Both the position numbers and the translations under genes were made by a program. The notes under the pieces are model-generated. The model was not told the origin of the DNA, ran no database searches, and worked only from the letters and a program-made list of their open reading frames with translations. From Bugula neritina (lineage: Eukaryota > Animalia > Bryozoa): a stretch of 64,000 bases of DNA. The DNA lies in contig OZ037769.1 of NCBI GenBank assembly GCA_964035545.1, forward strand, positions 13,670,633 through 13,734,632, read 5' to 3'. Positions 1,643 through 24,600 of this stretch are shown one piece after another; position 1 is the first letter of the stretch, and each line of letters begins with the position of its first letter.

Positions 1643-3897
1643 TCAAACATGTAAAGAGAAGACAACTGCTAACATCAAAACTGACTGGACCATGAAGCCC
1701 GCCTTTCCAAATATTGAATTGCCGGCACTGGTAGGGGTTGGAGCTAAAATTACAGAATAACACAAGACATAATAATACATAATATTATATAGTGCAACAT
1801 CAAAAGCATGCATCATATTCTAAAGCTGTATCAGTAAAAGTAAAGTTCTATAACAATATAATAATTAATATGTAGTCTTAACTGAGAGTTTTCAAAACTT
1901 GGTTGATAAATTGCAGTAAAAGCACCAAAGTCAGAAAAGTTCCAAGCCTCAACTGAGCTTGATCTATTTACAGTTGGCTGTGCAATCTTCCTGAATGAAA
2001 AATATTTGCCCCCACTGAGATTCGAACTGAAGACCTCTGGCTTGCAAGCAAGTGCCCTAACCATTACACCAGGGGAACCACTGGGTAAACTTACCACTAC
2101 ATTAAACTGAATATATTTATATATTCAAACATTTTTAGAACAAAATTAACAATACTACAGTTTGCAGCAATTGTTTCTATTTATATATATTTTAAACAGG
2201 GAAGAATATAATATCTGTAGGAAGTTGCTTACTTGCTGCAGTTGTTGAAGGAGTAGAAGTTGTTGTTGTTGTAGTGGTGGTCGTTGCTGAAATGAGTATA
2301 ACTCGCAATTATATCCTTTATTTACAAGCCTTGAACAATGAATAATATAGGCATATAATAAAGTATATTATATAATACATTGCTTACTTGTTGTAGTCGT
2401 TGGAGGTTGGGTAGTTGGAGTTTTTAATGTTGTAGCTCCTAAAATTAGAATAAATGCCTTTTTATTCATGCCACTGAAAGTTTAGACTTCTTGTTTTTAC
2501 CTTCACTAATGACATTCATAGTTTTGTTCCCCCAGTTTAACTTTTTAAGCAGCAATCATGGCTATATGTGAAAAAGCAATCAAGTCTGATCAACCTTTTT
2601 GTTTATGGTTTAACTGCTATTATAGGAAATATGAGGCCGTCTTTCCTACTTTATACTTAATTGCTTTCATTTCTTTTGGCCTGATATTTCAGACAAAGTA
2701 CCTCAAAAAACAAAAAAAAATTTACTTGGTGTAACATTATATATGTTAAACAAAAACATTGTTAGTGCCAATATAAGAGATAATGTCAAAATAAGAAATA
2801 TCTCAAGTGAGAACTTTAAAATAACAAGTTTATATAATAATATAGCAAACTAATCAAAAAAAGATAGGTAATAACTGCTGTATAGGTATGTTGTTTATAT
2901 TTAGAAATTTCAACAATGTGCATTGATATGTAATATTTCCTTCCCTACTTTGTTATTTATTATATTATTATATTATTATGTTATTTATTTATTATATATT
3001 ATTTTATATGTGTTTTGGTGTTTTATTATGCATATAATTTATACAATACAACATGGTATAATCAACAACTATTAGTTTTAGCTTGTTATTGCTGTATGTA
3101 TTGTTTAGACATGTACTTTTAATATTTAGAAGTTTGATTCAATAATAGTAAGAGCTTTATTAAAGTGGCCTCTTCAATTTCGTGTTTAGAATATTAATTT
3201 TAGTTTAACATTAAGAGGCCTTGTCCATCCTCTGTAATTAAAATGTAGAATCATCCTTGTTTGGAGCAGCTAAAATGAAGTTTGGACAAATGTAAATTTA
3301 CAAAAAAATATTAAATACACTCTTATAAGTGTTCATCTTCAGTTAAAAAAATAGCGGAATGTATAAAACAACGATGCTCAATACTTATATATAACTACAT
3401 TAACAAATCAATTGCCAACAATTTATTTTAATAAATTAACTATTATTTATTATATAAGGCGTATAAGCAAGTTTGTATATATGTAGTTAACGGCATTTTA
3501 ATTATATATTATGTTGTAATGTCTATAATAGTTAATGGTATACATATATATTATTATTGCAGAAACTTTTTAATGACAGTCATATATACTTACAAATCTG
3601 TCAATATAATATTATGCATGGTTTTAAAATGAAATTTTACTTTCACAGTAATTTTGATAATTTCACATCTCTTATAATAATTTCCTTTCTTCAAAAATAT
3701 AAAATATAGATTTACAGCGTTTTATATTTATAACGTAGATTATATTTTTATGATTGCAGCAGCTGTAAAAGGTATTTGGTTATAATGAAAAGTTATGGTT
3801 GTACCAATATTGCCATGGACTGTATAGAATACCACTTACCATCTGTTAAGGTGACAGCTATCAGCAGGGAAAGCAGCAATACTGCTGTAATCTTCAT
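1643..3897 (-). CDS. Gene A: 87-aa Thr-rich putative GPI-anchored mini-mucin
   Basis: Exons 3897-3840, 2438-2388, 2286-2233, 1743-1643; all introns GT-AG, phase 1. Translation MKITAVLLLSLLIAVTLTD-GATTLKTPTTQPP(T)14STPSTTAATPTPT-SAG-NSIFGKAGFMVQSVLMLAVVFSLHV*: signal peptide, Thr tract, small-residue omega site, hydrophobic C-terminus with no cytoplasmic tail. Confidence 0.88.
2003..2085 (-). mobile_element. Short tRNA(Ala-like)-derived repeat, family 2
   Basis: A box TGGTGTAATGG, CTTGCAA loop, B box-like AGTTCGAATC; second copy at about 35100; absent from the paralogous intron of gene B. Confidence 0.7.
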
Positions 3898-3950
3898 CCT
3901 TGTGTTGAGAAATCTAAATTAAGAGTATGTTTTCAAAAAACAAACATGTC

Positions 3951-4121
3951 TTTATATATGAGCAATAAACCTGTCACAGTGCACTTGCTGTGAGTGATTT
4001 TATCTCTACTCATATCTTTTACAGACCCTTTGATCTCATGCTATGTTTCCTCGTGATTTTTACAGATAAAGAAGTAGTTTGACTATAAGTAAATGTTTTG
4101 TTTACAAATAATCATGGCAAC
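3951..4121 (-). promoter_or_regulatory. Gene A promoter: TATA box, Fox-type TGTTTAC and X-box-like ATAATCATGGCAAC
   Basis: TATATAAA (minus) 3951-3958; TGTTTAC 4099-4105; X-box match 4108-4121; region conserved with gene B 9150-9410. Confidence 0.55.
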
Positions 4122-4447
4122 ACTTGACAATGAATGTTACAGTTGTAGCAACGCAAACAAGGAAAACTGAGTAATCACAGCAGGTACACTTCATGGGTTG
4201 TTTAGAAAAGGTACATGTTAAGTTACTGTGTCTAGAAGTTACTCACGCGGTAGTCAAATTCTAAGTGATCAGCACCTTGAGATTACCTACATCCTATAGG
4301 CTAGTTATAGTTACCATACTTTATAGCTATATTGCTATACATACCATTGCTAAGCTCTACAGCTTCTCTCAGGGCTTTATCATACACATTTATAATACAG
4401 TAGACTATAATTATATGCATAAACAAAAATATGCCACTACAACAGTA

Positions 4448-5745
4448 GGGGTAAGGGGGGGGGGGCACAACGGGCTGAATTTCGCATTTGTTGCTCTCAT
4501 TCGTCTGTTTTTCAAGTTACTAGTTCAATAATCTCTAGTCTTAATGCTGCATCTGTTGTCTGTTACAGGTACCAGTTTGTTGTTTCTATCTCTCTCACAA
4601 CTTTCAGAATAATGAAATTTTCATGACGAAAAAATTGGCCCGTTGTGCCGCGGTACCGGGGTACAATGGGCCACTGGGTGGGACATAACAAATATATTGA
4701 AATTTTGCCTATTTTGTTACATCTGATCTTTATTTTTTAATATTACAAATAAATAAAGATACTCTTTCGGACCTACAGCAAAATTCATGTTTTAGCTGCA
4801 TGTACAGCTTGTGCCACTACAGATAGCAGAGGAAGGCAAAATCAAACGCACATCACTCGGTTTTGCAGTGCCATTATCATTACTGTTTAGAACTAAAAAT
4901 GTTCTGTTATTTTCATTTCAGAGGAACGTTTATTAAAAAAAATTTTAGTAACATGTACTAAAAAGTTCCGAGTGGACTTTTTTCTATGAACTGTAGCTAA
5001 GGTTTGTGACTGGAGTTCGGAAGGGAAAGGGGGGAGCAAATGAGCAAATCACAGTTTATACTAGTCAAATACATGTATATTCTCTCAATGGTGTAATATA
5101 TAGTGATTACCATAACTATCTACTAGTAACAACAGCAGAGTGTTTTGTATTATGTATAAAATGGCAAAGCTTTAACCTCACCAGACGTATATATTAGGGG
5201 AGCTTCACCTTGTAGTTTTGTAGTCTTACCATGATGTCTTTGATATTTTACATAAAGGTCAGAAATGGCTATATCTATAGATTTTAGTAACATTCCAAAC
5301 AAACTTTTTGGGCAAACAAACTAATAACACTGATCAGGGTGCAATAATCAGGTGGCCCATTGTGCCCCGTGTGGCCAAATTGAAAATAAATGTGCCTCAA
5401 GGAAAATTTATTCTAGTGTTTGCTGTTATACTAGTTAAGCAATGTAGAAACAAGCAATGGCAACAATATTATAGTAAAATCTAGGCTTCTTGCTTTTGAG
5501 TGTAAAAAGTTATAAAGCTTTAACGACATCCTAAAAAAGTTACAAAAAGTAGGTAAAAACAGTTTTTTACTCGCCTTTTCAACACGTATGTTCCGCGAGT
5601 GTTGAAACTACAAAGGCTGAATAATTATGTCAATATCTTTTTATGAAGAAAAATCACAATTCTAGGTCAATAAGTTCTCTCACAATTTTGCCGGCTTTTT
5701 GTACCCCTATGACCGTTGTGCCCCCCCCCCCCCCCCCGTTACCCC
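4448..5745. mobile_element. Non-autonomous DNA transposon/MITE with TA TSD (Tc1-mariner/pogo type)
   Basis: TIRs GGGGTAA(G)nCACAACGG and CCGTTGTG(C)nGTTACCCC flanked by TA on both sides; internal GGCCC(G/A)TTGTGCC motif copies at about 4637 and 5354; interrupts the homology with the gene B upstream region. Confidence 0.85.
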
Positions 5746-6752
5746 TATAATATAAACACAAACACTGTTTGCCTTTGAAGTGTAAGTTTGAGTTCTATAT
5801 AACTTTACAATGCGGCACAATGCTAGACCCACCCTCAAAGCAGAAGTATATCAGTATACCTCAAGCCTAGGTTTTATATTACCTAGAACTACTCTATATT
5901 AGCTAACCTGCTGGTTTTTAAAATCTCTAACTGATGTTGTAGTGTTTTTTGTTGATAATTATATGATATACTTGTTTAAATCGTCTAATAATTTCTGCCC
6001 TTCTTTAGTTTTAAATTTTGCAGTATATAGCAGTATTTCTTTGTATAATTTCTATGATGGTGTTTGTAAATTGAAACTGTTAACACATTTTTCCAAGAGT
6101 ATGTCAAAAATAAGTCAATTTTATTTCTTCAGTGTTGATTACAAGTTTATTATGTGCAGCACTAATGTTCTATAACGTGCATAAGCAGTGCCACAATTTT
6201 GGTTTGAACGAATCTCATTCTATATAATATGCAATAATCTATAAAGGTTTTTGTTTGGTTTACAGATTGCAGTTTCACTGCTCACCGAAATGGTATGTGA
6301 CCTGGTTTTATATAAAAGTCTGTGTCTTGATTTTATTGTTATAACATTTTTTTTATTAGAAAGAGAATTATATATAGGCAAAACAGAGGCAATTTTGTTT
6401 CAATTGTTTACGCTGACATCACCGTTTGAAGCCTTTAACATAACAAAGCTCAGCACACACCACAGTTTTAGAATTATGTTGATTTGTTGTCCATATACTC
6501 AACTTATAAGTTTACATTGAGTTAAATACAAACAATGTTGACTAAAAGCTGAGAAAAAACATTTATAATTTAATAGTTGGCACTTTTAAACTATAAAAAT
6601 GGAGTAAACCCAATCATTACTAAATTTATCCTAAATCAAATGGTTAATTGCTCTTTTTTTATTTGTGCAATAAACAAATATTATTTCAAACAATATAATG
6701 TTAAGTATGATGATACTAGATGATCATAATAATTACAGTGAAGGTGCTTAAA

Positions 6753-9099
6753 TCAAACATGTAAAGAGAAGACAACTGCCAACATAAAAACTGACTGGAC
6801 CATGAAACTCGTCTTTCCAAATAGAGAGTTGCCTCCACTGGTAGTATTTTGAGCTAAAATTACAGAACATGAAACATAATAAAACATACCTGATGTAGAA
6901 TGATAACTCCAAACTGTTGTATACAAGCCAATATAAATACTCTCAGGTAATATTAGTATATTAGAGATTAGTTTTCTTTTTCTGTCAGTGAGGTATATAT
7001 TGTAATATATTTATATATGCATTACTTACTAATTTCGCTTTAAAATGTGTGATAAGACCTTATAATTTTTATTCATCCATTGTTTTAATTTTTGACTTGC
7101 TTAAACAGAATGCTATATCCCCACATAGTTTACCATATAGTAGCCTACATTATATCAAATAATAATATACATATATGCTATAATATCATAAACTATAAAC
7201 TGTGATTATAAGAGCAGCAAAGCTTTTTAACAGTACAGTATGTATACTGTAGTCTTACAGGGTCTTCAGAACATGCAATAAAGTCAAGGAACTTGAAACC
7301 TCAACTGAGTCTGATTCTCCCCTACAGCTGGCTGTGCAATGTTTGAAAGATGTGAATTTCAAAACTGAATAATATATTTCTACACAATTATTTTAGGAGA
7401 AACAGAAATTGCTGCATAATTTGCAATTATCTTTTAACAACAAAAAGTATAGATCTATAAGGAGGCAATACAATGCTTACCTGCTACAGTAGTGAGTGCT
7501 CCTGGTGCTACTGTGGGTGGTGGTGCTGCTGGCGGTGCTGCTGGCGGTGCTGCTGGTGGTGCTGCTGCTGGTGCTGCTGCTGGTGCTGCTGTAGTAGTGT
7601 TGGATGCTGCTAAAATTACCATACATGCCTCTTGTTGCAAATATCACTAGATCAACTATTTTTTCTAACCGTCAGGTCTAAACAAGATAAGACCTTTGTC
7701 CTTATAAGGAGCTGCATGAGCCATCTCCCATATTTGTAAGGTCATCATGACTAGTTAGCTAATATTTCCTATTTTATATCTATTTACTTTGTTTTTAGTT
7801 AAGGCAGGACAAAACGGTTTAAAAAAATACTCATTTATTGTAGCCTAGCTAAGCTGTGCTACATATTTCAGATAAAGGTAAAGTTAATATATAGTAATAT
7901 AATTTACAAATTTATTAGTAATATAACTTATAAAGTTAATATTATAGTGATATAACTTATAAGTGACAATGAGTTGAAGCAAATATCCTTAGCTAAAAGA
8001 GAAGTTTAAAGCTTATAAAATAGCAAGCTAATTGGAACAAAATAGGTATTTTAATTTATCATTTCTGTTTTTTATTTACCTTCAAGATTATATGGGCGTC
8101 TATGTATAATAATTCTTTTCATTTTCTACACATATAATACATTATAATATATGCATGTGTGCTAATGTTTGTTACTTACAATGACTATTATATAAACATT
8201 TCATAATTTGTTAAGTTGTATTTATAATTGCATATGTTTTTTGTTGAGTTTTTACAATTTAAAACAGAATTAAATATTAAAGCTGAGAGCATATATTAAA
8301 AAATTTCTCATAATTCTATACTGAACCATTTTTTGTTTGACAATTGATTTTGCAATAAATTGACACGTGTTATAAGAATAATTTACAGTTTTAGTGCAGA
8401 TATACAGTAGTTTATAAAAGTGATCAAAATAAAATTCAAGCAAAAGAGATTTGCAAAAGCTAAAACTAATTATACATTTTTGTCGATTCAAAAAGAGGCT
8501 CAACTTTCAAACTTGTTACAGATAGCTTAAATAGACTGCAATTAAACTAACTTTAAAATTGATTCAAAAATTCTACAGTAATAAATAATACGCTAATTGT
8601 AAAAAAATATATTTTAATTATAAAATTAATTCTTTTTTTTGTTATATTCCTTACATTTTGTAAAACCATGTTTGATCAAAACCTTTCTATATAGTTGATG
8701 GCGCAAGTTTTTATTATCTTATAACATAATTTATTGTAATACATATTACATTCATCCTACTGGCAAACAATTATGCTTTACAAAGTGTTATAAATATATA
8801 ATAAATTAACTGTAAAAATGTTCATACAGCTTATATATATTAATATATAAGTATTTTAGAATTTCACATATAATTGCTTCTCTTTCTTCAAAAATATCAC
8901 ATGTAATTTTAAGTTTAATATTTATAAAATAAGTTGTGTTTTATGGCTGAAAATGTGCAGCCAATCAACAGCTGTGAATTCAAAACAAAAGAGTAATAGT
9001 TATAACATTGCCATGCATGAACTGTGTAAAAGACAACTTACCAGCTGACAAAGTTACAGCAACCAGCAGGAAAATCACCAATACTGTTGTAAACTTCAT
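6753..9099 (-). CDS. Gene B: 95-aa Ala/Pro-rich putative GPI-anchored peptide, paralog of gene A
   Basis: Exons 9099-9042, 7609-7481, 6853-6753; phase-1 introns. MKFTTVLVIFLLVAVTLSA-AASNTTTAAPAAAPAAAPPAAPPAAPPAAPPPTVAPGALTTVAAQNTT-SGG-NSLFGKTSFMVQSVFMLAVVFSLHV*. First and last exons have the same lengths (58 and 101 nt) as in gene A and are highly similar. Confidence 0.88.
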
Positions 9100-9152
9100 A
9101 TTTGTCTTGGAGAATCTACAGAAGGAATATGTTTTCAAAAAATAAACATGTC

Positions 9153-9322
9153 TTTTTATATCAGCAGTAAACCTGTCACAGTACACTTGTAGTGATTTAA
9201 TCTTGAACTATATTATCTTTTACAGAGCCTTTGATCTAATGTCATGCTTCCTTATGACTTTTACAAATAGCGAAGTAGTTGGACTACAAGTAAATGTTTT
9301 GTTTACAAATAACTATGGCAAC
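9153..9322 (-). promoter_or_regulatory. Gene B promoter: TATA, TGTTTAC, X-box-like ATAACTATGGCAAC
   Basis: TATAAAAA (minus) about 9153-9160; TGTTTAC 9300-9306; X-box match 9309-9322. Confidence 0.55.
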
Positions 9323-9692
9323 ACGGAGCAATGAATGTAGCAGTTATAACAAGGCAAACAGGGAAAACTGAGTAATCAGAGGGGCACTTGATGGGTTGCT
9401 TAGAAAAGGTGTAACACAATTAAACACTGTTTGCTTTTGATTTATTAGTTTGAGTTCCAACTTTGCAATGAGGCACAGCACTAGTCCCACCCTCACCAAG
9501 TCATAAGTATTTCGCAGACTCTCAGCTGAGGAACTTTTATAATTCTAGGCCTGGTATTTTATATTAACTATAGAACCACTCTGATCTCTTATCTACTGCA
9601 TGGTGCTCAAAGTCTATCTAACTGATATAGTGATTGATGTTGATATTTACACAATGTTTTGTTTTGATTATAAATACTCAAAAAGTTTACAT

Positions 9693-9784
9693 TTTGTAAA
9701 TATATAATGTTAGTGGGGATATTTACAGTGCTCTAACACTGCCTAGCACTGTAAATATCAGCGCAAATATTATATATTTGCAAA
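9693..9784. repeat. Imperfect ~90-bp inverted repeat (possible MITE remnant)
   Basis: GATATTTACAGTGCT / AGCACTGTAAATATC core with outer arms TTGTAAATATATAAT / ATTATATATTTGCAA. Confidence 0.6.
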
Positions 9785-9863
9785 TTGTTTATCATGTTTA
9801 ACTCAAGGAAGTAATATAATGTGAAATGGGAGAGTGGCAATTAAAAAAATTGAAGAATATTAA

Positions 9864-10013
9864 ATAATATAATATAATATAATAATATAATATAATAATA
9901 TAATAATATAATATAATATAATATAATATAATATAATATAATATAATATAATATCATATAATATCATATAATATCATATAATATAATATCATATAATATA
10001 ATATAATATAATA
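9864..10013. repeat. AT-rich (AATATAAT)n-like microsatellite
   Basis: Directly visible. Confidence 0.9.
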
Positions 10014-10545
10014 TTCTCAAAAACTGATAAAGATAGAGAATAGTATTGAAGAATATAATTGTATAAAAACACTTCAAAGTTACCTGTATTGCAGCTATTC
10101 AATGTTAATTTATATATAGATATAACATTGCATGTTGAATTTTACAATACACTATATAACTGAAATTTTGTGTAAATAATATCATTTCAAACATTTGAAG
10201 AAATATAACTACTGCTTATTGAAACACTTTTTCAAGTGATTAATGTTTTTACTGCCAAAATTTCAACAATTTTTCAACATGATGAAAAGCTCTTTGTGAA
10301 TGATTTTAAAATACATGCAGTGCTAAACTTTGCATAAGAGTCGAAACTTCACTGGCTTTTATATGACAAGTAACCTAGCTTTGAAATATCGTGTTTTGCT
10401 ACTATTGACCGGGGATATTAAAAATCTAAGTAATGAAGCAAAATAACTCGATTATCAATATTAATATTGCATTAACTTGCAGCACTCAAAATCTTTACAA
10501 CTTTTCTGACTTTAGAGACCCACTTCAGCTATTTCATCATGCCAG

Positions 10546-10546
<1 letters not shown>

Positions 10547-10598
<52 letters not shown>

Positions 10599-10637
10599 TG
10601 TGCGTGTGTGTGCTTGTGTGTGTGTTTGTGTGTGTGT
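10547..10637. repeat. (GT)n microsatellite
   Basis: Directly visible. Confidence 0.95.
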
Positions 10638-12299
10638 GAGTGTTTGCTAATAACATGCTATATAGTTTGAATATTGTTTTTTAAAAGCAGCTGCCTAAGG
10701 CTTTGATGCAAGTCTGTTTAAGTTGGTCCTTGCTAATAAGTTAAACAAAATTGTACTATAATACCAAAGAAGCTGTACTGCATGCAGGCTCACAAATATT
10801 TTAGTCTGAATTAATTAAAAAAAAGATAAATATGAAACACATCCACAATTTAGCAGTATCAGCAACTATGTTCCAGATTTACCAGTTGAATGACTTTTCA
10901 AAGTAGTGTAATTTAAAGTCAGCCAGCTTTCAAAAATGTGCACAGCATCAAATTCATGATAAAGTATATTATTAATGCTAAATAAACTCAATCCAACAGC
11001 TTATTAGTTTTATTAATTGAATTCTTAATTCATCAGTGAACAAATAAATTATAGGTAATTTGCATTGGCTATCTTTTATATTGAAACAGCTATAATTTAG
11101 TCAGCCAACTGTGATAATTTTACATTCAATGGAGGAAGTATTAGTATTTGTTAGTAGTGAATAAAAGCGTGCTAGCAACACGCATATAAACATCTTTGTA
11201 ACTGTTTGGCTATTAATTCAATAAAAATTGAAAAGGGTGTGGTACATAGTTTTAGCAACATAGATAACATCTTGTGTATGTTAGGCTAATAAATTAATCA
11301 GACTTGGGAGATTGAAAAAAGTGTTATGAGTTTTTGCACTTTTTTTATGGCATTTGACCAGTAACCTTAATCAGTAAGCCTAATTAGTAAGCTTTGAGGA
11401 CTGTATATGAGGAAATAAAAGCTTCACAATGTAATAATGAGTGATAAGATTACAACTTCAAGTTAATTTTGACGCCCAAATCTAACAAATAGACTGGCAC
11501 TGTATAATGGGGGTCCCTCAATGCTATTTGTAAAACTATTATCTAAACCACTTTAGCTCTACCTCGTTGCTGTGGCTGAAACTTCCTGGTAACCTCAAGC
11601 TGTGATAAAAACTAATGTTGATGCAAGCAACTGCTGTTGCCATGGTGCTTTGTAAACAATGTGTCTATACTTAATTACATGTTGAGAAAAGATGTATCTC
11701 AATAAACTGTTAAATGTGTTAGTCATCACCACTTGCTTGGTAATTATCTTTCACAAAAGATTCACATACTTGAGTTATTTTTACAACTTTGTTTGCTGTT
11801 CTACATAAACTATGAGATCATTCGGTGTGGTAGGTAATGGTTTAGTTTGGTATCTGATAAGAGAGCTGTTTTTATTTTCTATTTGCAGTTAATTGCATTT
11901 TCATGGTTGCTGTAGAACAGCGTTTGAAATTCCTTAAATAGTGTTTACTTATTCTTTTTTCCTGCTGCTGTTTTATCTGTAAGAGTGAATATAGTAATGT
12001 ACTTACTATTTCAGCCAATCAGGTTCTTACACATTATTTATAAATATTTTTTATTTTAAACTGTCCATGAGCAGAAGCAAATAATACATATTTAAAGTCA
12101 AATTACCAGCAAAAAATATATTTACAAATTCCAGATTATAATTGAATGTAGCTCAATAATGATTTTATTTTAAAATTAAGGCTTCTTAATTTTAGTTACA
12201 ACAGGTTTTTAAAAATGGTTTTGTTAGAATGAAGCTACATAGTTATAGCTTTATAAATAAAATGTCAGGAGATAATTTTATTGACAGTTTAGTTAGTGT

Positions 12300-13987
12300 T
12301 TAATGAAGGACAACTCCAAACAGAATGAAGACACTCAGTAGGAAACTGGCTGCTGCAGGTAATGAACTACTTCCATTGGTGGGATCCTTGCTTGGACTAT
12401 TCTTCGCGCCTTTAGGTGAAGCTGTGTAAAAAATAGAATATTTCATTGAATGTGCAGTTACATTTCAATAGTTTGCAAAATAAGGAGCATGTATGCAAAA
12501 ATTAAATCAATAACAAGACCCATGGTACAATTCAAACAAATTAAATAAAAAATAGTTGAAGCCGGAAGATTTCATATCCTTAGAATGTAACGATAGTCGG
12601 GTATTTAAAAAACTATGACTCTGTTGACTCACTCGCGCAAGTTAAAAGTCGCCATCTCTGTGAGAAACCCTGACGAGAATGTTTTTGTTAAAGTGAGCTA
12701 AGGACTTATTTAAATGAGACACAGGAGCAATTATGATTGGATGCTCTTTCTAACATCACCGTGGTTTTTGTCTCAAGAACCCTTGACATTGGGTTTACCA
12801 GGCAAATGCTCTAACCCCTAGACCTCGACTGATCTCTAAACTATGAATGGCTCTGTTAACACAGAAGCTTAATTTTACTTGAATGACAAGTAATTAAAAA
12901 TGTTCTTATATATATAGATATAAATTAAATTTACAGGCTGCTAATTTTACTAATACAGTTGGATTAAATTAGTTTGTACCTCGTTGGGATGTGGAGTTTC
13001 CTGTTGTTTGCTGAGCCGGTACAGAACCGCTGGCATTGGGTGTAGCTGCAACAAAGTATTAAAGTGTACAATATATGTTTTAATATGCCAATAGTAGTCC
13101 AAAAGAAAATAAATTGGTAAACTAAAGGCATGTTGCTATGCAGGTAAAATAGATGAATTTTTTTATACCTGTTGATTTGACATTTGATGGCAAATTAGTA
13201 GGACTTCCTGTTGTAGAATTACTAGCACTTGGCGCTGTAGTAGTTGTAGTAGTTGAATTAGCTGCATAAAAGATGTACAAAATGGCCTCAGAGTTATCAT
13301 AATAAAAATCAACATAACATATTTAATGAATATCATAAAGTAAACAAATAATTGAAGAACTCAAGTAAACTATCCAAGCCTTCAGTTAGATAATTGTGCG
13401 GTTCATCAAAAGTAGACAGCTATAAGCAAATTCCTATGTGTGACGCTCACCTGCTTTTAATGCCATTATAACAAGTAATACACATGCAACCGTGACAATT
13501 CTGAACTGCGTGTTTGCTGTACTATATACCTATTCACTAAATGGAGGAAGATTTGCAAGAGGAAATGGTTTCAAACCAGTCTGGTATCTTTTTTTATATA
13601 TGGACAGAAATTAAAAACCAATAAAACCAAACACTATTAAATAACTTGCCTTTAGTAGTAGGATTTGCTGTTGTAGTAAGGGTTGATGTAGCATTAGCTG
13701 AACTGGCTGCAAAAATAATTTTAGCCTTTAGGTTCAAATGAAAAAATTGTCATTAAATTTAAATTGTTTACATCTAATGAATTTTGTTTCATATGTAGAT
13801 CCTATATATTTCCACTGCATAAAACAAAGAATGAGAGGCATGCAATGAAGTATTCACGAGGTTAGACAATTAGCTGGCGTGTAAAAAATAATTAGCTATA
13901 AGCACATTTCTATATGTGAAGAAAATACTTACCTGTTTTTAATGCCATTATAACAAGTAACACACAACTGATGGTCCTGAAATACAT
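12300..13987 (-). CDS. Gene C: ~130-aa Ser/Thr/Asn-rich putative GPI-anchored glycoprotein
   Basis: Exons 13987-13933 (MYFRTISCVLLVIMALKT), 13706-13650 (GC donor AAG|GCAAGT), 13261-13169, 13045-12980, 12421-12300 (...DPTNGSSSLPAAASFLLSVFILFGVVLH*); all phase 1; sequons NAT, NST x3, NAS, NGS. How the 5' exons connect is uncertain. Confidence 0.75.
12627..12837 (-). mobile_element. tRNA-derived SINE, family 1
   Basis: Reverse complement of the 16159-16380 element; degenerate TSD AAACTATGA..CTCTGTT. Confidence 0.85.
13451..13650 (-). pseudogene. Duplicated promoter + signal-peptide exon of gene C, with ACG in place of ATG
   Basis: About 13400-13655 aligns with 13880-14135; exon 13511-13451 reads ACG-QFRIVTVACVLLVIMALKA with an intact GTGAGC donor. 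Confidence 0.6.
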
Positions 13988-14070
13988 GTTTGCTATGTAC
14001 TATATACCTATTCACTAAATGGAGGAGTATTTGCAAGATGTAAATGATTTCAAATCATTCTAGTATCCTC

Positions 14071-14214
14071 TTTTATATATGGACAAAACTTAGAAACCAA
14101 ACAAACCAAACGCTATTAAATAACTTGCTTTTATCTAAGTCAGCTTATATTTGGAAGGTATTATTATATAAGTTTGATCATTAGTGATCTTCCGTTAGTG
14201 GACGTCATGGCAAC
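14071..14214 (-). promoter_or_regulatory. Gene C promoter: TATA and X-box-like GACGTCATGGCAAC
   Basis: TATATAAAA (minus) 14071-14079; 13/14 match to RTHNYYWTRRNRAC at 14201-14214. Confidence 0.45.
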
Positions 14215-15644
14215 ATAGCATAATCTACCACATCTTAGCAATAAAGATAAGATCATACAACTATAATGTGAAGATCAAGACACAGAAATAAAGTTAGTCT
14301 TGTCAACAAATTAAACAATCTTCCTCAACCTTATTACATTTTTTATTAAACTGCCATTGATAGCAGAGTTTTCCTCAAACATTTGCCAGCTTTGTTATTG
14401 TAGATAAAGACTCAAGCCATGTGAAACATTGTCACCTATTATGCCATTATTGACAGCTTAATTAGATTTTCAACAATAACTGTTTATATAAATAATAGTT
14501 TCAGACTTGCTGCATACAAACATTGCCCTTTACTCAAGACATTTACAAAAAGTACATATATTACAGTTATTCCCATTTTATGCAGTCATACTCTACGCAG
14601 ATTTTAACAGAGGATATACAAAACAATTATGGATTATTTTACTAACAAGTTACCAGTCATCATTTTGCCAGCTTATAGCTTGATATAATTTTAAAAAACA
14701 GTGCAGTTGAAATTTACAATCCAGACTTTGTGATCCGTGGCTGCCATAAAATGTTGAGCTTTCATGGTATGTATTATTGCAGTTTTCTATATCTGGGAGT
14801 TTAGTGCATTATGCCACTAGTTGTATCGCTACCAAGCATGGAAACAGGGTGTATTGAAGCCAGTTCCTAATTGGTTACTCATAAACATGTAAACTGTACT
14901 AATTTCTCCGTTTAGTATCATTTTGGAGTGAGTTATATGTTATTAGCTACAAAAAACATTTTTCTCACACGTATAATTTTGCCATAGGTTTTGTAATTCA
15001 TGCAGCATGTTGCAATATAATTAATATATTTATTTTTTAATAAATATGTAAGTAAAACATTGAAGTAAATTATTTCTATCCCACAAGTAACGTTTTGTAT
15101 ACTACTGTTCCATGCTTGGCATGACCAAAATTTAACTTCTCTTTTATTCAATAAACTTATTACAGATTACAATTATAAGGCACTTTCACGAAGCAATAAT
15201 TTATTAGGTAATGAATTAATAATAACCTTCAGAAATACAGGTTGAGTTATGATGCATAATCAACATCCAGGTGGCATTTTGGGAAGGAACTTCCCTAAAA
15301 AGGCTACAGCATTGTATAGCAAGTGCAATACATATAGCACCACTTTAGTTGCAACCTAACCTTGACCTTGAGCACAGCATATGCCATGAGGTACACGAAG
15401 ATAGCCAATCAAATCTGGTCACACAACTGATCTCTAATGCTATTGTTTGTGCTTTATCAAACTGCAGAACTGTAACAGGGTAATGTCACCAAATCTGTTA
15501 CACTTTTAATAAACGTCTCTGATTTGCTGGAAATAACTGGCTCAGAGAAAGTCAGAGAGAAGAGTGAACATCTGTCTCCCTGTACTAAAGACAAGCACGA
15601 TGTATACAATGCAGTCAGGTGGGCAGTGAAGTGTGAAGAGGTGA

Positions 15645-18600
15645 TCATCGTGCCTCTAGTATCAAAGTTTCCTGGGGGACCAACTTTGATTCCTTCAGGG
15701 TTTTGCTGGTATCTTCCTGAGTCAACTAGATGGACAAATAAACATTTCAGAACATTCTGTAACACATAACTATGAGTAACTATAACAACTTTCAGTAGAG
15801 ATACTAGGTGCCTTCGGACTAACGGGCAAAGGGTTATCACACTACATCGCAAACTTGAGTAAATTATCTGAATTTTAAAAAAAAAATTTTTATCAGTTCA
15901 AGAAAATTGGGTGAAATTGCAGATAAACAGTCAGGTGCATGAGATATGTCTCTATGTATAGACCTAAAAACACACTAAGCTGGGAGGATGTCTAATGATG
16001 TTACAAACTTAGTAACTCATATGTGATAAACCAAAACCAACTATACCATCAGTTTTACAGAATATCTATACACTCTACAGCACTAGATAACCAATACCAG
16101 ACGCTACCTGTACAGACACACAGTTGTACTTTAACCTGTCATGTGACTTGACTATCACAGGGAGAAGCCGTGGTCTAGGGGTTAGAGCGTTTGCCTAATA
16201 AACACGAAGTCATGGGTTTGAACCACAGTAAAGGCCATTGGTGATGTTAGGAAGAGCATCTAGTCATAACTGCTCCTGTGCCTCATCTGCACAAATCCTT
16301 AGCCTAATTTAATAAAAAGCCCTTTCTCCACCGGGGGTTTTCTCACAGGGATAGCGACTATAAATTTTCGTGAGTTTTTTATGTGACTTGACTATCACGT
16401 CATGTTGACTTACATCTCGCCGTGGAAATGTCGTGAGAACTTTATAGTCTGCTATCCGATAGCCCTCCAGCATGAGATAGTCAAAGAGGACAGCGAGTTG
16501 GGTGTCACCTAGGAACCTCCTAGACACCACCTTACCATCAGGACACCTGAATCTCAGTCTAGCCATTTCCTGTTTACAGTCAACTGGCGGCTCATCCGGA
16601 ATACTATTGGCTACAGACTGTCTCATGGCCTGCCAATCACAAGATGAGAAGATTACAACTAGCTGGAGGTAACACTTCTGTAGCTATATGACACGAGTGT
16701 AGCTAGGTGACTTTGCATTATCATGGACAAAATATTGAAGTGCACTAATGCAGCATATTGCGACAGATAAGATGACCCATTGAACTCTACTACAATACAT
16801 TAGTAGAGTTAAATGGGTCATTGATAATAGCAGGCAGCTAATAGTAGGTATTATCTCACTACATGATAGAGCGAAGTTGGGTGAGGAGGCAGCCCACCGA
16901 ACACAGTACTAATGCAACAGTTGACCTCTGCTATAACAATAGAGAGACACACTCACAAGATATTAACTATACATAGAGACGGCACTTACTTCCATAGTTT
17001 CCTGTTCCAACTTCATATCTTCCTGTTTCTGCTTCTCAATTCTTTCTTCTTCCTCTTTCTGATTTTGCTAAAATCACCAGACAATCAATGTAGGTTTCAC
17101 ATGGGCATTATCATGTAGCCCGTATAGAACTTTAACTTGGCACTATTCCAATTCATTGGGAAGATTTTTCATTTGCTCAAATAGGTTCAACATTCTCATG
17201 GATATCAGAATGCTGGGCTAAGCCTTATTATCTCATAAAAAGATATGGGAAGTTTATATGACATGTTATACACACAGTGAATGCACCAGCAAAAAGGTTA
17301 TTGCAAGTAAAATAATTACATAATTTAGATTAAATGTAAGAATGTATCTTATACTGTTACCTTCACTCTGTACACTGAGCACATAATAGAGATTATACTG
17401 TTACCTTAACTCTGTACACTGAGCATATAATAGAGATTATACTGTTACCTTTACTCTGTCTACTGAGCACATAATAGATATTATACTGTTACCTTTACTC
17501 TGTCCACTGCCAGGGAAGCTTCATAAGCAGCGTCTTGCAAAGCTTTCATCTGTTCTCTCTCTATTCTCTCTTGCTACAACATCAAACGTGTGCAACATGT
17601 ACAATATGTAAGTACACATGACACATATACATAGAGGTAAGTACACACAACACATACACACATGTAAGTATATAAGATTTATTTATTCATGATGTATTTA
17701 AAATACAGACAACTTGCACTTATAATTTTTTTAGTAAACGAATGCTAATCATAATTTGTTACTTAAATTGGTATATTTTCTTTAATTTCATATCTTTACC
17801 CATCCATTACTAAAAACTTCAAATCTCTCACAAAATTCCCCTGATAGGGGTAGCTTCGCAGCGAATTGACAAACAGTTATGCAGATAACAAAATGCAGGT
17901 GAGTGAGACACTATGCCGAATATGTTCACCACTTGTGTGGAAACTCACCTCTTCAACGATATCTTGGGTTCTGGCCTGTTGAAATCTTTCCTCTGCATTC
18001 AGCAGTGACGTCATCATTTCTTCAGTGGTGGATCCAGCTTTCACCGTAGTCAGTACCTCATATGACCCCTTCAGCTGTCACAATATAACAGGCAACATAA
18101 GGGCATCATACTAACTGGCCTGCCACCCGATCAGGACATGGCGGTGAAAGTTTAACATCATACTATGTAGCCTGTCTAAAGCAAAATTCCTGGATTTAAC
18201 TCGGAACTTCGCATTAGGCACCCTTACATTTAACTTTAATTTACCTGTAGTCATAATTAGTCGATGTGTGAAATATTGTAGCAGGCTGAGAGTGGGAAGA
18301 TATATTCCAATTTACTTCATAGATAATTATGAGCAGTAGTTATTTTGTGCAAATAAAAATTATGAGCAAAAAGAAAACAACAAATTGAGTGTTAATTGAT
18401 ACAGAAGTGATGGTGGAGAATTCAAATAATAGCTGACAGTAATTATGTATTAGTACTTGAATATCCAGTGATTAAATGAGTGATTAGACTGAGCAATTGG
18501 CTGAGTTTTATTGGCTGAGTGAAGGAGTGACAGCATAAGCTTGTAAAGAGCTATCCCCAGCGTGCTGTAATCAGCACATTTCCATTATTAAATGATTCGC

Positions 18601-21600
18601 TACACAGCCTATTACACTTTGTTTTGAGTTAATGGAAGAAAAGAATATAAAAAAACATTTTGGTAAGACTAAAAATAAACTCTCACATTCGCTCAAAGTC
18701 TCTGTCATTGTGAAAATCCCTGGTGATAAAAATGTTCAAACAAGTTACAAAGTGTGCCTCTTAGTAGCATGGCTTAAGCCTTAAAGAGTTTCATAGTAGT
18801 TCACGGCCCTACCAGAATTTGAACCCATGACCATGCCTTACTAAGCCAGTACTCTAACCACCTTAGCTGCTTCTTTTTTACAAACCTCGAAGAAAATCAA
18901 TAAAAGCTGTGGTAGTGCCCCACCCATTCCCTCCCCCCTTCTGCACTGGAATCTCATTTCAGCGAGTTATTTCAAGTACCAAACTTAAAAAAAACTTTGA
19001 ATGAGCTTTCAAGGCACAATGTAGTAACATAAAATACAACTACATAATATAATCACAACAGAAAAAAATCTAGAGTATACCTTGGCTATTACTATCAATA
19101 CGGGCAGTTGGTCTACCCCCATCTCTTTAACCAAGTCTGTGGCATCTCGGCCAGCTATCTGGGAGAACATTGTCAGAAACCTAACAGAACATACAGTAAG
19201 TGTGTAGAGTATAGTTGTATATGCATTTGTAATATTATAGATCTACATAGTAAGTGTATTGTTTATATTATATAGCTGTATAGAACTACATAGCAGGTGT
19301 ATTGTTTATATTATATAGCTGTATAGAACTACATAGCAGATGTAATGTTTATATTATATAGCTGTATAGAACTACATAGCAGATGTAATGTTTATATTAT
19401 ATAGCTGTATAGAACTACATAGCAGATGTAATGTTTATATCACTAGGTTGTTAATAATGGTTTAGTAAATTAAATATAGATACACACATGAAAGAGAACC
19501 CAAAACACAGTTATTTAATGAGGATATAAAGGAAAAAATACTTGCAAAACAAAAGAATAGGGAGGGCAAAACTAGCAAAACTTGTACAGAGATTTAATGA
19601 CTGTGTTTAGTGACAGAGTAGACAAGCGGTCATTAAATGGTGGGCCAAATAATGGTGAGTCACTAAATGGTGGGCCAAATAATGGTGAGTTACTAAATGG
19701 TGGGCCAAATAATGGTGAGTTATTAAATGGTGGGCCAAATAATGGTGAGTTATTAAATGGTGGGCCAAATAATGGCGAGTCACTAAATGGTAGGCCACTA
19801 CACACAGAGCAAACACTAAAATAACGAATCATCATTGTAGAATTATACATGAGCTTTATGGCACCAAATTGCACCAAAAGTTTACTTTTCAAGTTTGAAT
19901 TATACTTGAAATTGAGCATGATTAAAGTAGTAAAACAGGACATGCCTTTTAATACTAATAAGCATTTTTAGCACCTGATTATTAAAAGCGAAAACCTAAT
20001 TACAAAGTTTATGATTGAATATTTTAAGGTAATCTTTTGACAACATAAAAATATATTGCATCCTTCACCAACGTTTTATTGACTGGAAATTGGTTAAATG
20101 ATAATAAAATAGAGATGAATGCTGAAAGATATAGTAGAGGTGGCTAACCTTCTTTTGTTTACGGGGAGGGTGATATCCCAGCCCCAAGTTATGAAGTTTG
20201 CTGAAAGATAGTTGACTATAGTTTCTGAGCACAAGACTTGCTGACAGAAAATGTTGGCAGCAATACTTTCGTCGTGGTGAATGTACACAGCCAGAAGTCT
20301 TCTCTGAATTATATACCATTATATATACATTATCATTATATATACATTATCATTATATATACATTATCATTATATATACATTATCATTATATATACATTA
20401 TCATTATATATACATTATCATTATATATACATTATCATTATATACAATCATATACATTATACACTACATATAATTATAAATACATTATATACATATTTAC
20501 ATTATATAAATCATATAAACCCATATTTACATTTTATAATACAATCATACATACATAATATACATAATATAAAACAATGCATCCATTATATACAATCACA
20601 TATAGATTATATACATATTTACATTATATACAATCATATATACGATCATATATATGACACACATAACTGCTGTATAACATATTGCATCAAATATATATTA
20701 TACTCACACATAACATTGCATAATACACAATATATTTATTACCAGCCAAGACTTTCAACATTGAATTACATTCAACAGATAAAAAATACGTTTACTTATG
20801 ATAATATTGGGTATTATAAAAAAAATCAACTAAAAGAATGTGACATGTCCTATAGAGTTACAATAAACCATGCAATACATCTACAGATAAACTAAGAGAT
20901 GTCAAGTAGCAGCAGGTGCTTGCAGGGTGACTCACCTCAGACGCCGTGCACTGAAGTGCCACATCCACAGCATCTCTGAGAGTACCGGAGTAGAAATGAG
21001 GTCGTGTCTGCGTTCCGTACCTGTTCCCAAACTCCACGTTCATTTGCTCAATGGCAGCGGCAGCATCTTCTATGTCAGCCGGTACTGCAAATACTCTATA
21101 CATATTATCATGTGAATAAATACTTTATATACATTATCATATCAATAAATACTCTATATATATTATCATATCAATAAATATTCTATATATATTATCATAT
21201 CAATAAATACTCTATATATATGATCATATCAATAAACACTCTATATATATTATCATATCAATAAATACTCTATATATATTATCATATCAATAAATACTCT
21301 ATATATATTATCATATCAATAAATACTCTATATATATTATCATATCAATAAATACTCTATATATATTATCATATCAATAAATACTCTATATATATTATCA
21401 TATCAATAAATACTCTATATATATTATCATATCAATATATACTCTATATATATTATCATATCAATAAATACTCTATATACATTATCATGTGAATAAATAC
21501 TCTATATATATTATCATATCAATAAATACTTTATACATATTATCATATCAATAAATACTTTATACATATTATCATATCAATAAATACTCTATATATATTA

Positions 21601-24600
21601 TTATATCAATAAATACTTTATACATATTATCATGTGAATAAATACTCTATATATATTATCATATCAATAAATACTCTATATATATTATCATGTGAATAAA
21701 TACTTTATACATATTATCATATCAATAAATACTCTATATATATTATCATGTGAATAAATACTTTATACATATTATCATGTGAATTAATATTTTATACATA
21801 TTATCATACATGATGGGTCATTTTACTTAATTTAGTACACACTGGATATCTTCAGTTTTTAGCTATTTTTCACCATTTAACTGCTAATAAACATAATTTT
21901 TGATCCAAACTAGTAAAACACGAATAAATACACCTAAATAATCAAAGTTCCTTTTAATTTTGCTTCATTCCCCATGTTTTTTCCTAATTATTCAGCTACT
22001 TTTTGGTTACGGACCGTTATGGTTTTTTCGTAATGGTCCGCACTCCTAATAAGCTAAATAAATAAGAAAAAACATGGGAAATCAAGCAAAATAAAGAAGA
22101 ACCTTAATTATTTCGGTGTATTTATTGGTGTTTTACTAGTTTTATGCAAAAAGCCATGTTCATTACCATTTAAATGGTGAGAAATAGCTAAAAACTGGAG
22201 ATTCCAGTGTGTACTAAATTAAGTAAAATGTGAATTAATACTCTATATATCATTATATCAATAAATACTCTATATATATTATCATCTCTGCTGAAACACA
22301 CAGTTTTATAACTGAGCTGGTTTTAAAGTTTAAACTTTGAATATTTAAGCCAGAGCTCTGTAGGTGATAGCTACGGTAAATATGAATATTTCAATACTGC
22401 ATAAATAAAGTGTGTCGGGAATTCTCTAAGTAGACAGTTCTTAGTCTGAAATCTGACTTACTCAGAGATTCTCTGGTGTTTCTGGTGGGTTGGACCGGAG
22501 ACAGCCGTTCGATATCCATGATATCATCATCGGCTATAAGAACATCACTACTGTCTGAGTCACTGTCACTGTGCACAGTGTACGTGCGAACTGCGGGCCC
22601 CCTACCGCGCCCCCTACTCCTATCAAAAAAGTTAGACATTGGCAGCTGACTGCTGCGTCTGCATACTGTCAATACGTGGATTGGTGTATTTAGCTGGCAG
22701 CCTGCCAAGGTCATGTCATCGGAAACGTGGGAAGACCAGCCAGTCCATACCTGGGAGAAGGTAGGTATACCGTATCTGTTCTGAATATCTTCTTTTATCT
22801 ACAAAAGGAAGACACATGAATTCTGACCAATCACATCAAAGCTTCAAGTTATTGACCAATCAGAGAGTTGGTATTTTATGCTAGCAGTAGAATCTAGTTA
22901 TCACTAAGAGATTTCTTGATCAAATCAGATGCAGTAAACTGTAGTATTACACACTATTACATGCAAGTGAAAAATCATTGAGGAAGCAACTCTAAAAATA
23001 CTAGTCACTCACAGCTTTTAAACTCGATTTTCAGAACTTTCGTAGACCTTATCAAAGCATTTTACTTGGTAAGTTGAAGAAAACTGGCTGCATTGAGTTG
23101 GCCCTAATGTGGTTCACAAGCTATCTAACTAACCGTACTCAAATAAAATAAAGTCCTGAGTCTAAACCTTTAATAATTGCCACCTGCGCAATAACATGCC
23201 CCATCATTACCTCCTCTTGGGTGACACCCCATATTACCTACTTTTCTATTAAACTTAGTGATAAAACAAACAAAAAAACAAAAGAAGAAATTACTAATCA
23301 CTTAAAATAATGAAAAATCCGTGTAATGTAGACTAATAATTGACCAACCAACTGTAGTATTATACACTCTTACTAGTGTGCGATAAATCATCGATGACAT
23401 AACTCTTAAAAAAACCAGTTACTTATATAATAATATTAAATATTGGCGAATGAGTCATAACACAGACTAATAATTAGCCAACCAATAAGCAGTACCTCTG
23501 CTACAGTCTTGGTGCCTGGTTCCTTCATATCCAGTTTCAGCACTTGACCCTCGGTTATATTGACCTCTATCCGCAACTCGTACAATCTGGAGAGGTCAAC
23601 TGAGATGGTTCTATCGAGTGGCATATTAGTGTCCATGGAGGGCCGACTACCGGCCACCAGGACAGTGATGGTGTTCTCCCTAGGCAGCTTCAACTCATGT
23701 AACATCATCTGTAGAATAGCAGAGACATGAATGTTTAATCTTGGCAGCAAAGGTGTAAGGTCAGTGACTATATGCTGCTATAACAGACAACTATAATGTG
23801 CTGGAAGCCATGAGGTAACAGGTAATATCCAATCACTGCAAGTGCAATCCGCTGAGTTGAAAGATTAGCAAAACAGATAAATGGTGAAACATAAAGGTAA
23901 TGTACATTACTCATTTTTTTCGCATTGTTCAGTGATAGTGTGCACTTTCTAGTAATGCTATATACATTATCCAGTAATGCTATATACATTATCCAGTAAT
24001 GCTATAAATTATTCAATAATGCTATATACATTATCCAGTAATACTATATACATTATCCAGTAATGCTATATACATTATCCAGTAATGCTATATACATTAT
24101 CCAGTAATGCTATATACATTATCCAGTAATGCTATATACATTATCCAGTAATGCTATATACATTATCCAGTAATACTATATACATTATCCAGTAATGCTA
24201 TATACATTATCCAGTAATGCTATATACATTATCCAGTAATACTATATACATTATCCAGTAATGCTATAAATTATTCAATAATATACATACATTATCTTCA
24301 GGTGTTGTGTTTTTGTTCTCCCATACCAATGATATGACAGACTTGTCTTCCCCAATACGGGCTGAGATCATATCTTTCAGATCATCTAGAGAACCAAATA
24401 GAATAATATGCTGTTATATTACTACATGATTATATTATATTACTACACTGCTATATTACTATACCATAATAGTATATCATTATATTATTACATAGTTATA
24501 TATTAAATTATTATATAACTCAATTAATATATTAAATTAAACTACAGCAGTGCCATATCACAGTCAAGTATAACATGAAACTAAAGTATAAAAAGTTGGT

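Follow-up and report, generated by a model that had tools for sequence, protein, structure and literature searches.

What do the short, low-complexity exons on the minus strand of Bugula neritina chromosome 5 encode, and how can neighbouring genes with similar ends differ so strongly in their cores? The window analysed here, a stretch of 64,000 nt, contains three adjacent genes (A, B and C), which we consider likely to be functional and to encode small, predicted GPI-anchored peptides of the mucin type. All exon coordinates are window positions on the minus strand.

Three adjacent genes with a common layout

The genes share a layout in which a signal exon is followed by phase-1 exons rich in Ser, Thr, Ala or Pro and by a GPI-type last exon. 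Each has a TATA box 61–92 nt before the ATG and an AATAAA downstream, and the precursors comprise 87 aa (A), 95 aa (B) and 111–130 aa (C, depending on the model).

Gene A consists of four exons of 58, 51, 54 and 101 nt, which are joined at GT-AG junctions in phase 1 throughout. Its first exon (3840–3897; 19 codons plus 1 nt, with the ATG 61 nt downstream of the TATA box) encodes the signal peptide. The core is encoded by the Thr/Pro-rich exon 2 (2388–2438, phase 1-1) and the Thr-rich exon 3 (2233–2286, phase 1-1), in which 17 of 17 codons are NCN and which has no counterpart in B. The last exon (1643–1743) comprises a predicted omega site S-A-G 27 residues before the end, a spacer and a hydrophobic tail up to the stop. 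The original prediction described A as about 60% Thr with a run of 14 Thr, which agrees with the measured content of about 62% and a longest run of 14 that crosses the joint of exons 2 and 3. Intron 1 of A also contains an AT-rich simple repeat at 2976–3014, and the region 2900–3100 was masked or left out of later comparisons.

Gene B has a 58-nt signal-peptide exon (9042–9099) with a TATA box 61 nt upstream, a single 129-nt core exon (7481–7609; 37 of 42 codons NCN) and a 101-nt last exon (6753–6853) with a predicted omega site S-G-G and a hydrophobic tail. The expected Ala/Pro repeats and two NTT sequons were both present, the sequons at residue 23, in the N-terminal part of the core exon, and at residue 65, in the last exon. 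Gene C starts with a 55-nt signal-peptide exon (13933–13987, TATA box 92 nt upstream), followed by a 57-nt Ser/Thr-rich exon 2 (13650–13706), a 93-nt Ser/Thr/Asn-rich exon 3 (13169–13261), a possible 66-nt exon 4 (12980–13045), which is open and in phase but has a weak donor, and a 122-nt last exon (12300–12421) with a hydrophobic tail and a predicted omega site at N-G-S or the following serines. About six sequons had been anticipated for C; the longest model of 130 aa indeed carries six, but at most five are usable because N106 is the proposed omega residue. All cores are domain-free, with a Thr+Ser content of about 70% in A, 45% in C and 21% in B, where Ala and Pro dominate, so that B is a poor fit to a mucin-type Thr/Ser/Pro-rich core.

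Signal-peptide and GPI-type features

By rule-based calls, all three first exons encode a basic residue and a hydrophobic stretch with a 9-residue hydropathy of 3.2–3.7, and all three precursors have a candidate omega site 24–27 residues from the end with small omega residues and a polar spacer. The final 17–18 residues are mostly hydrophobic and end at the stop, with no charged cytoplasmic extension. A rule-based filter, which was devised after the genes had already been seen, found three signal exons and three GPI-type last exons in this stretch, compared to 0.1 and 0.05 per 14 kb in order-3 Markov DNA. These counts are 30 to 60 times those in the simulated DNA, and a linked pair occurred in none of 60 simulations. 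Together with the clean splice sites and uniform phase, the excess supports the earlier claim of three same-strand genes with signal, low-complexity and GPI-signal-like exons and a CD24- or small-mucin-like design of coding genes in which splicing and GPI anchoring are predicted.

Alternatively, the tail could hold the protein in the membrane by its C-terminus, or cleavage could release the peptides as soluble components of mucus or cuticle. In A and B, the final 17 codons (pN 0.025, pS 0.09) are more conserved than cleaved signals usually require, and in Echinococcus, apomucins that carry predicted GPI signals are believed to reach an extracellular layer (PMC3510090). However, the tail is short, contains Gln, Ser and His and has no basic residues on a cytoplasmic side, and the sequence in front of it shows the usual small-residue omega region and a spacer. 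The low pS in these 17 codons suggests gene conversion or small numbers, not protein constraint. We therefore regard a membrane anchor or a shed peptide as unlikely and a GPI signal as the preferred reading of the tail.

Origin of genes A and B

The first exons of A and B are equal in length and 79% identical, as are the last exons at 86% identity (dN/dS 0.36), and the promoters are 83% identical over 300 nt. Intron 1 is 75% identical over its initial 180 nt, whereas the remaining introns align only weakly (65–70%, z 2.5–5.6). The proposed alignability of the two genes thus holds for the terminal exons, the promoters and the start of intron 1 but is marginal for the other introns. On this alignment, A and B can be recognized as products of a tandem duplication of a whole gene. 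A DNA-transposon-like insertion (4446–5747) with terminal inverted repeats of about 30 nt separates the upstream region of A from a block that is shared with B (5760–5852 versus 9422–9513). In C, promoter homology to A and B was not supported (p 0.09–0.34), and we tentatively regard C as probably an older paralogue of the two.

The cores of A and B had been described as exchanged. This is not supported, because the core exon of B retains the acceptor and donor context that flanks exon 2 of A and both are NCN-codon repeats; exchange of core exons between A and B was therefore rejected. Rather, the cores lie between homologous splice flanks, where slippage within the NCN-codon repeats and substitutions at first codon positions have made them diverge in place.

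Gene C in two assemblies

We compared C with its orthologue in a second B. neritina assembly (GCA_010799875.2). This comparison covers C only; for A and B, contigs of a related animal stop 4.4 kb upstream of the final exon of POLK and do not reach the orthologues. The C orthologue stays in frame, with the first exon 96% and the last exon 93% identical. Exon 2 is 24 nt longer and exon 3 is 27 nt shorter in the second assembly, both in frame, and all three length-changed coding exons differ by multiples of three, whereas the adjoining introns carry many other indels. Sequon positions turn over between the assemblies, and four to six sequons persist. In the second assembly, the possible exon 4 is frameshifted and its donor is deleted, which, together with the weak donor here, makes its use doubtful.

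The ends of C show a pN of 0.038 versus a pS of 0.102 (pN 0.019 in the GPI signal), while the core shows a pN of 0.252 versus a pS of 0.208 over 39 aligned low-complexity codons; in the FAF1 control, pN was 0.008 and pS 0.169. The expected contrast between conserved ends and fast-changing cores is thereby borne out. However, a core pN/pS of about 1.2 on few sites is what relaxed selection would give, and we saw no positive selection on the C core in these 39 codons; positive selection was rejected. Since ordinary introns nearby differ by 10–15%, the divergence of the core is not a locus-specific excess. "Rapidly diversifying" in an adaptive sense is thus not an apt description of this three-member set. 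Judged from this comparison, the ends are under purifying selection, and the cores are selected for frame and composition but not for sequence.

C also contains a 476-nt internal duplication, with a duplicated promoter and first-exon copy (13418–13654, exon 13511–13451) that has ACG in place of the start codon and had not been noticed in the original prediction. In the second assembly, this copy is frameshifted and lacks a donor. The duplication left a dead second promoter and first exon as well as exon 2, presumably in use, whose GC donor lies at the duplication junction. C is a tidy case of a partial tandem duplication that yields a new GC-donor exon, with the spare promoter and first exon decaying independently in two lineages.

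The decayed first-exon copy and doubtful exon 4 of C, as well as the transposon-like element about 550 nt upstream of the A start codon, might indicate that at least one of the genes was silenced recently and is now a relic. This is improbable, as none of the three genes has a damaged reading frame, splice site or TATA box and the ends of C are under purifying selection between the assemblies. It is likewise improbable that the peptides are polymorphic markers for self/non-self or microbe recognition with cores that diversify under selection, partly by core-exon exchange: although the C core differs greatly between two assemblies named B. neritina (in lengths and in the loss of exon 4 in one), its pN slightly exceeds pS and symmetric phase-1 exons permit shuffling, the substitution rates and splice flanks described above argue against it, and only three members (at least) were found, with no folded recognition domain.

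Family size and known systems

DNA, protein and profile searches combined with a 224-kb scan revealed at least three family members in the genome; a weak signal-exon match on chromosome 2 (E 0.14) was rejected, since inspection of the place revealed no signal exon. No homologues outside Bugula were found by exon-by-exon and tail-profile searches. A 32-position profile of the A/B tail, which reaches only close kin, matched no protein at E 0.001 among 1.84 billion representatives, and the last-exon frame of B had no match in 5.8 billion proteins. Pattern and profile searches of JGI metagenomes, exact look-ups of ten ORFs, and Pfam searches at E 0.05 with five exon pieces, each searched separately, likewise gave no match. 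A more distant FAF1 contig (9.5 kb) carried trypsin genes, and its 6.8 kb of downstream sequence lacked a small gene of this kind. With blank Pfam and tail-profile searches, the assumption that any likeness to CD24/CD52, arabinogalactan peptides and trypanosome mucins lies outside detectable homology stands, and we found no published description of the family.

Novelty among invertebrates, which had been implied, is not supported. The Echinococcus germinal-layer apomucins EGC00317, EGC02904 and EGC04254 combine a signal peptide and differing Thr-rich cores with a near-identical C-terminal predicted GPI signal; between species, their ends are >95% identical and the remainder about 63%, they are highly expressed and some have an unpaired Cys (PMC3510090). 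They share the layout of a small spiralian family with the predicted Bugula set; a sequence relation was not detected with the A/B tail profile. CD24, an 80-aa precursor with a mature glycopeptide of about 33 aa, two N-sequons and a GPI signal (PMC8347636), and CD52 are close in size to A and B. However, a Pfam match to CD24 (PF14984) is absent, language-model scores of 0.75–0.79 are at chance level and below the 0.9 lead level, and the Bugula peptides have no known equivalent of Siglec-10 or selectin binding.

The Trypanosoma cruzi MASPs likewise have conserved ends around divergent mucin cores, and the arrangement of conserved ends and a variable, repetitive centre seen in MASP/TcSMUG is also found here. 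In contrast, the MASPs occupy about 6% of the genome and are used for surface variation by a parasite, and MASPs and mucins form a large multigene family, whereas Bugula has three intron-containing genes (at least three members found) with neutral-rate cores. The B repeat resembles plant arabinogalactan peptides (PF28140, classical AGPs), in which a short Ala/Pro/Ser/Thr core lies between a signal peptide and a GPI signal, but the Bugula exons have no Pfam match and a language-model score of 0.75–0.77. AGPs are defined by hydroxyproline-linked arabinogalactan, a plant chemistry that is unlikely in animals. Invertebrate allorecognition proteins of the Hydractinia Alr and Botryllus fuhc type have folded ectodomains and extreme allelic polymorphism tied to fusion; the Bugula peptides lack a folded domain, and the C core changed at a neutral rate in the one cross-assembly comparison. 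It would be a long shot to view the Bugula peptides as bryozoan-specific minimal glycan-display peptides whose cores differ in length and exon make-up among colonies of one species and so signal surface identity when colonies fuse or symbionts are handled, an independently evolved CD24-like "self" mark in a colonial invertebrate.

Proposed role and significance

The signal peptide would take the precursor into the ER, where GPI transamidase would cut off the last 24–27 residues. The mature, unstructured peptides of 40 (A), 48 (B) and up to 86 (C) residues could carry O-glycans on Ser/Thr (about 28, 10 and 38 sites, respectively) and N-glycans at two sites in B and up to five in C; the Ala/Pro repeat of B is probably a stiff spacer. 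By analogy, we infer the tissue and role of the peptides, which may form a hydrated, lubricating or anti-adhesive coat in the epithelial glycocalyx. Their cores change by slippage, by first-position changes among Thr, Ala, Pro and Ser codons and by the addition or removal of symmetric phase-1 exons.

This architecture arose many times and is unsurprising by itself; the genes would gain much greater weight only if their cores turned out to be polymorphic in populations and linked to recognition. No description of the three genes seems to exist, and the NCBI draft has no annotation for C; they thus exemplify a class of very small surface proteins overlooked by gene finders. For bryozoan biology, they provide candidate glycocalyx components in a model fouling species.

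Results

The sequence established gene anatomy, duplication history and selection pattern for A, B and C, three adjacent minus-strand genes for small predicted GPI-anchored mucin-type peptides, and by its evidence these are real genes. The models rebuilt here bear out the exon layout and compositions of the original prediction: A has four exons (58, 51, 54 and 101 nt; 87 aa), B has three (58, 129 and 101 nt; 95 aa) and C has up to five (55, 57, 93, 66 and 122 nt; 130 aa), with all joints in phase 1 and a TATA box and a downstream AATAAA in each gene. Between a signal-peptide first exon and a GPI-type last exon, the core of A is 62% Thr with one 14-Thr run and that of B is largely Ala (40%) and Pro (25%), bearing two NTT sequons, while C has six sequons, one coinciding with the proposed GPI attachment residue. 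Two rule-based filters run over 224 kb gave five hits for signal exons and four for GPI-type last exons, three of each supplied by A–C. Composition-matched simulated DNA yielded 0.1 signal and 0.05 GPI-type exons per 14 kb and linked pairs in 0 of 60 runs, a comparison that serves as a plausibility test since the filters were devised with A–C already known.

A whole-gene duplication gave rise to A and B; besides 300 nt of promoter, in which the two are 83% identical, it took in one block upstream and another on the 3′ side. Their cores look unrelated as protein and were originally taken to have been exchanged, but their DNA context shows a pattern of divergence in place. The B core exon matches A exon 2 in the acceptor region (shuffle p < 0.003), 12 of the 13 first intron bases at the donor are alike, and both cores consist of NCN codons (17/17 in A exon 3; 37/42 in B exon 2, 29 of these NCA), in which a changed first position makes Ala or Pro out of Thr and the unit grows by slippage. 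With these homologous splice flanks, we saw no sign of core exchange between A and B. The one additional, symmetric core exon of A is most simply explained by local exon duplication. Between the two genes, dN/dS is 0.36 for the last and 0.74 for the first exons. Upstream of A lies a 1.3-kb DNA-transposon-like element (window 4446-5747) whose terminal inverted repeats are G-rich and whose two ends both carry TA; some 68 kb further right there is another copy (L015:8721-9972) at 84% identity.

In C, 476 nt are duplicated in tandem, from the promoter through exon 1 and intron 1 into the 5′ portion of a core exon; the copies share 82% identity across 240 nt (z 6.2 for the intron, 3.8 for the exon). 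The upstream copy retains its ATG, and its truncated core exon ends at a consensus GC donor, common to both assemblies, created where the second promoter copy starts. The second first-exon copy has ACG at its start, intact frame and donor and 6 additional nt here, and is frameshifted without donor in the 2020 draft, GCA_010799875.2; these different lesions show a spare copy decaying independently in each assembly. In this assembly exon 4 is open but weak in its donor; in the draft it has a 2-nt insertion and a deletion removing the donor, which makes its use uncertain. Every exon-skip form of C keeps the frame. The last introns of A (window 1988-2101) and C (12631-12839) each contain a short interspersed repeat of a distinct kind; both repeats are tRNA-like SINE candidates that occur many times in the 224 kb, and the one in C recurs in the draft.

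The draft represents genotype S from Virginia (PMC7576161). Its contig VXIV02001142.1, which has no gene annotated at C, carries a 108-aa open orthologue with introns ~85-90% identical; the contig stops short of B and the comparison covers C. Exon 1 is 96% and the last exon 93% identical, exon lengths change by +24 (exon 2), −27 (exon 3) and +3 nt (exon 5), and introns show numerous indels of other sizes. The ends have pN 0.038 against pS 0.102 (GPI signal, pN 0.019) and the core pN 0.252 against pS 0.208; two FAF1 exons gave 0.008 and 0.169. Thus, the ends are constrained, whereas change in the core runs close to the neutral rate with frame and composition kept, which lends no support to the proposed adaptive diversification of cores. 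Sequons shift position, with four retained. Over window 10547-25349, introns differ by 10-15% and FAF1 synonymous sites by ~17% from the draft, although both assemblies are named Bugula neritina. Genotype S reputedly being common in the UK, this leaves two readings, with the Plymouth colony belonging to a further cryptic type or the species being hyperdiverse.

Searching the whole assembly by DNA, protein and profile returned A, B and C alone, giving a family of at least three members. The tail of C resembles those of B (p 0.006) and A (p 0.033, both against block-shuffled controls) but its promoter gave no alignment to the A/B promoters; a common origin is likely, if short of shown. Exon-by-exon queries found no homologue in large protein sets or Pfam, the 32-residue hydrophobic ones reaching close kin only. 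A language-model search scored CD24 and arabinogalactan peptides at chance level (0.75-0.79), which mirrors no more than the pattern of a GPI signal.

The Darwin Tree of Life assembly tzBugNeri2.1 comprises 216.00 Mb in 320 scaffolds plus mitochondrion, with chromosome 5 at 17.72 Mb (PMC11480708). Neighbours of the cluster are a DNA polymerase kappa gene (POLK), which lies beyond the window's left edge, and, to the right, FAF1/caspar (window ~15600-25500, minus strand; UBX and FAF1 Pfam matches), whose UBX exon groups with B. neritina 'casp' (KAF6034151.1) and which the NCBI draft breaks into two models (572 aa and 100 aa). What we take to be a phospholipase B-like gene, located 12-23 kb to the left of the window (L006-L007), separates POLK from the FAM221 block here, whereas these two adjoin each other in a related animal's contigs (L026, L027). 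Further features are a mitochondrial ribosomal protein exon (32254-32625, plus strand; MRP-L28, PF09812), CUB-domain type I membrane protein-like exons with a Thr-rich stalk (33800-38140, minus strand), more CUB-like exons near the right end (58000-61600, plus strand) and an 830-nt hexamer microsatellite (22-850) producing three spurious ORFs of ~300 codons each.

Discussion

A–C probably encode GPI-anchored small mucin-type peptides of the epithelial surface. By established secretory biology, the precursors would enter the ER and lose a 24-27-residue GPI signal, Thr/Ser would be O-glycosylated and sequons N-glycosylated, and the mature peptides would be displayed as a short brush. Alternatively, the products might be tail-anchored or shed, which we consider unlikely. 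That one or more of the genes is a relic, with a decaying spare exon in C beside constrained ends, is highly improbable.

As small GPI-anchored mucin-type peptides, A–C would work like several known systems. CD24 is trimmed from 80 aa to a glycopeptide of 33 residues with two N-sites (PMC8347636), T. cruzi MASPs combine highly conserved ends with a repetitive, variable centre (PMC2691823), and the apomucins of the invertebrate Echinococcus have distinct Thr-rich cores and an almost identical predicted GPI signal, orthologues being >95% identical at the ends and ~63% elsewhere (PMC3510090). By sequence, A–C show no detectable relation to any of these, and no publication on them was found in the open-access literature; as originally proposed, they are apparently undescribed, though Ensembl's annotation of this assembly may include such models.

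The strong TATA promoters, conserved between these two genes (A and B), suggest that both follow one tissue-restricted expression pattern, and gene conversion could be an alternative cause of their likeness. Selection on composition rather than sequence favours a physical role over specific receptor binding, and a recognition marker is the least probable reading. A glycocalyx role in lubrication, hydration and anti-adhesion fits better. The design of these peptides is already known; the genes themselves appear to be the new part.
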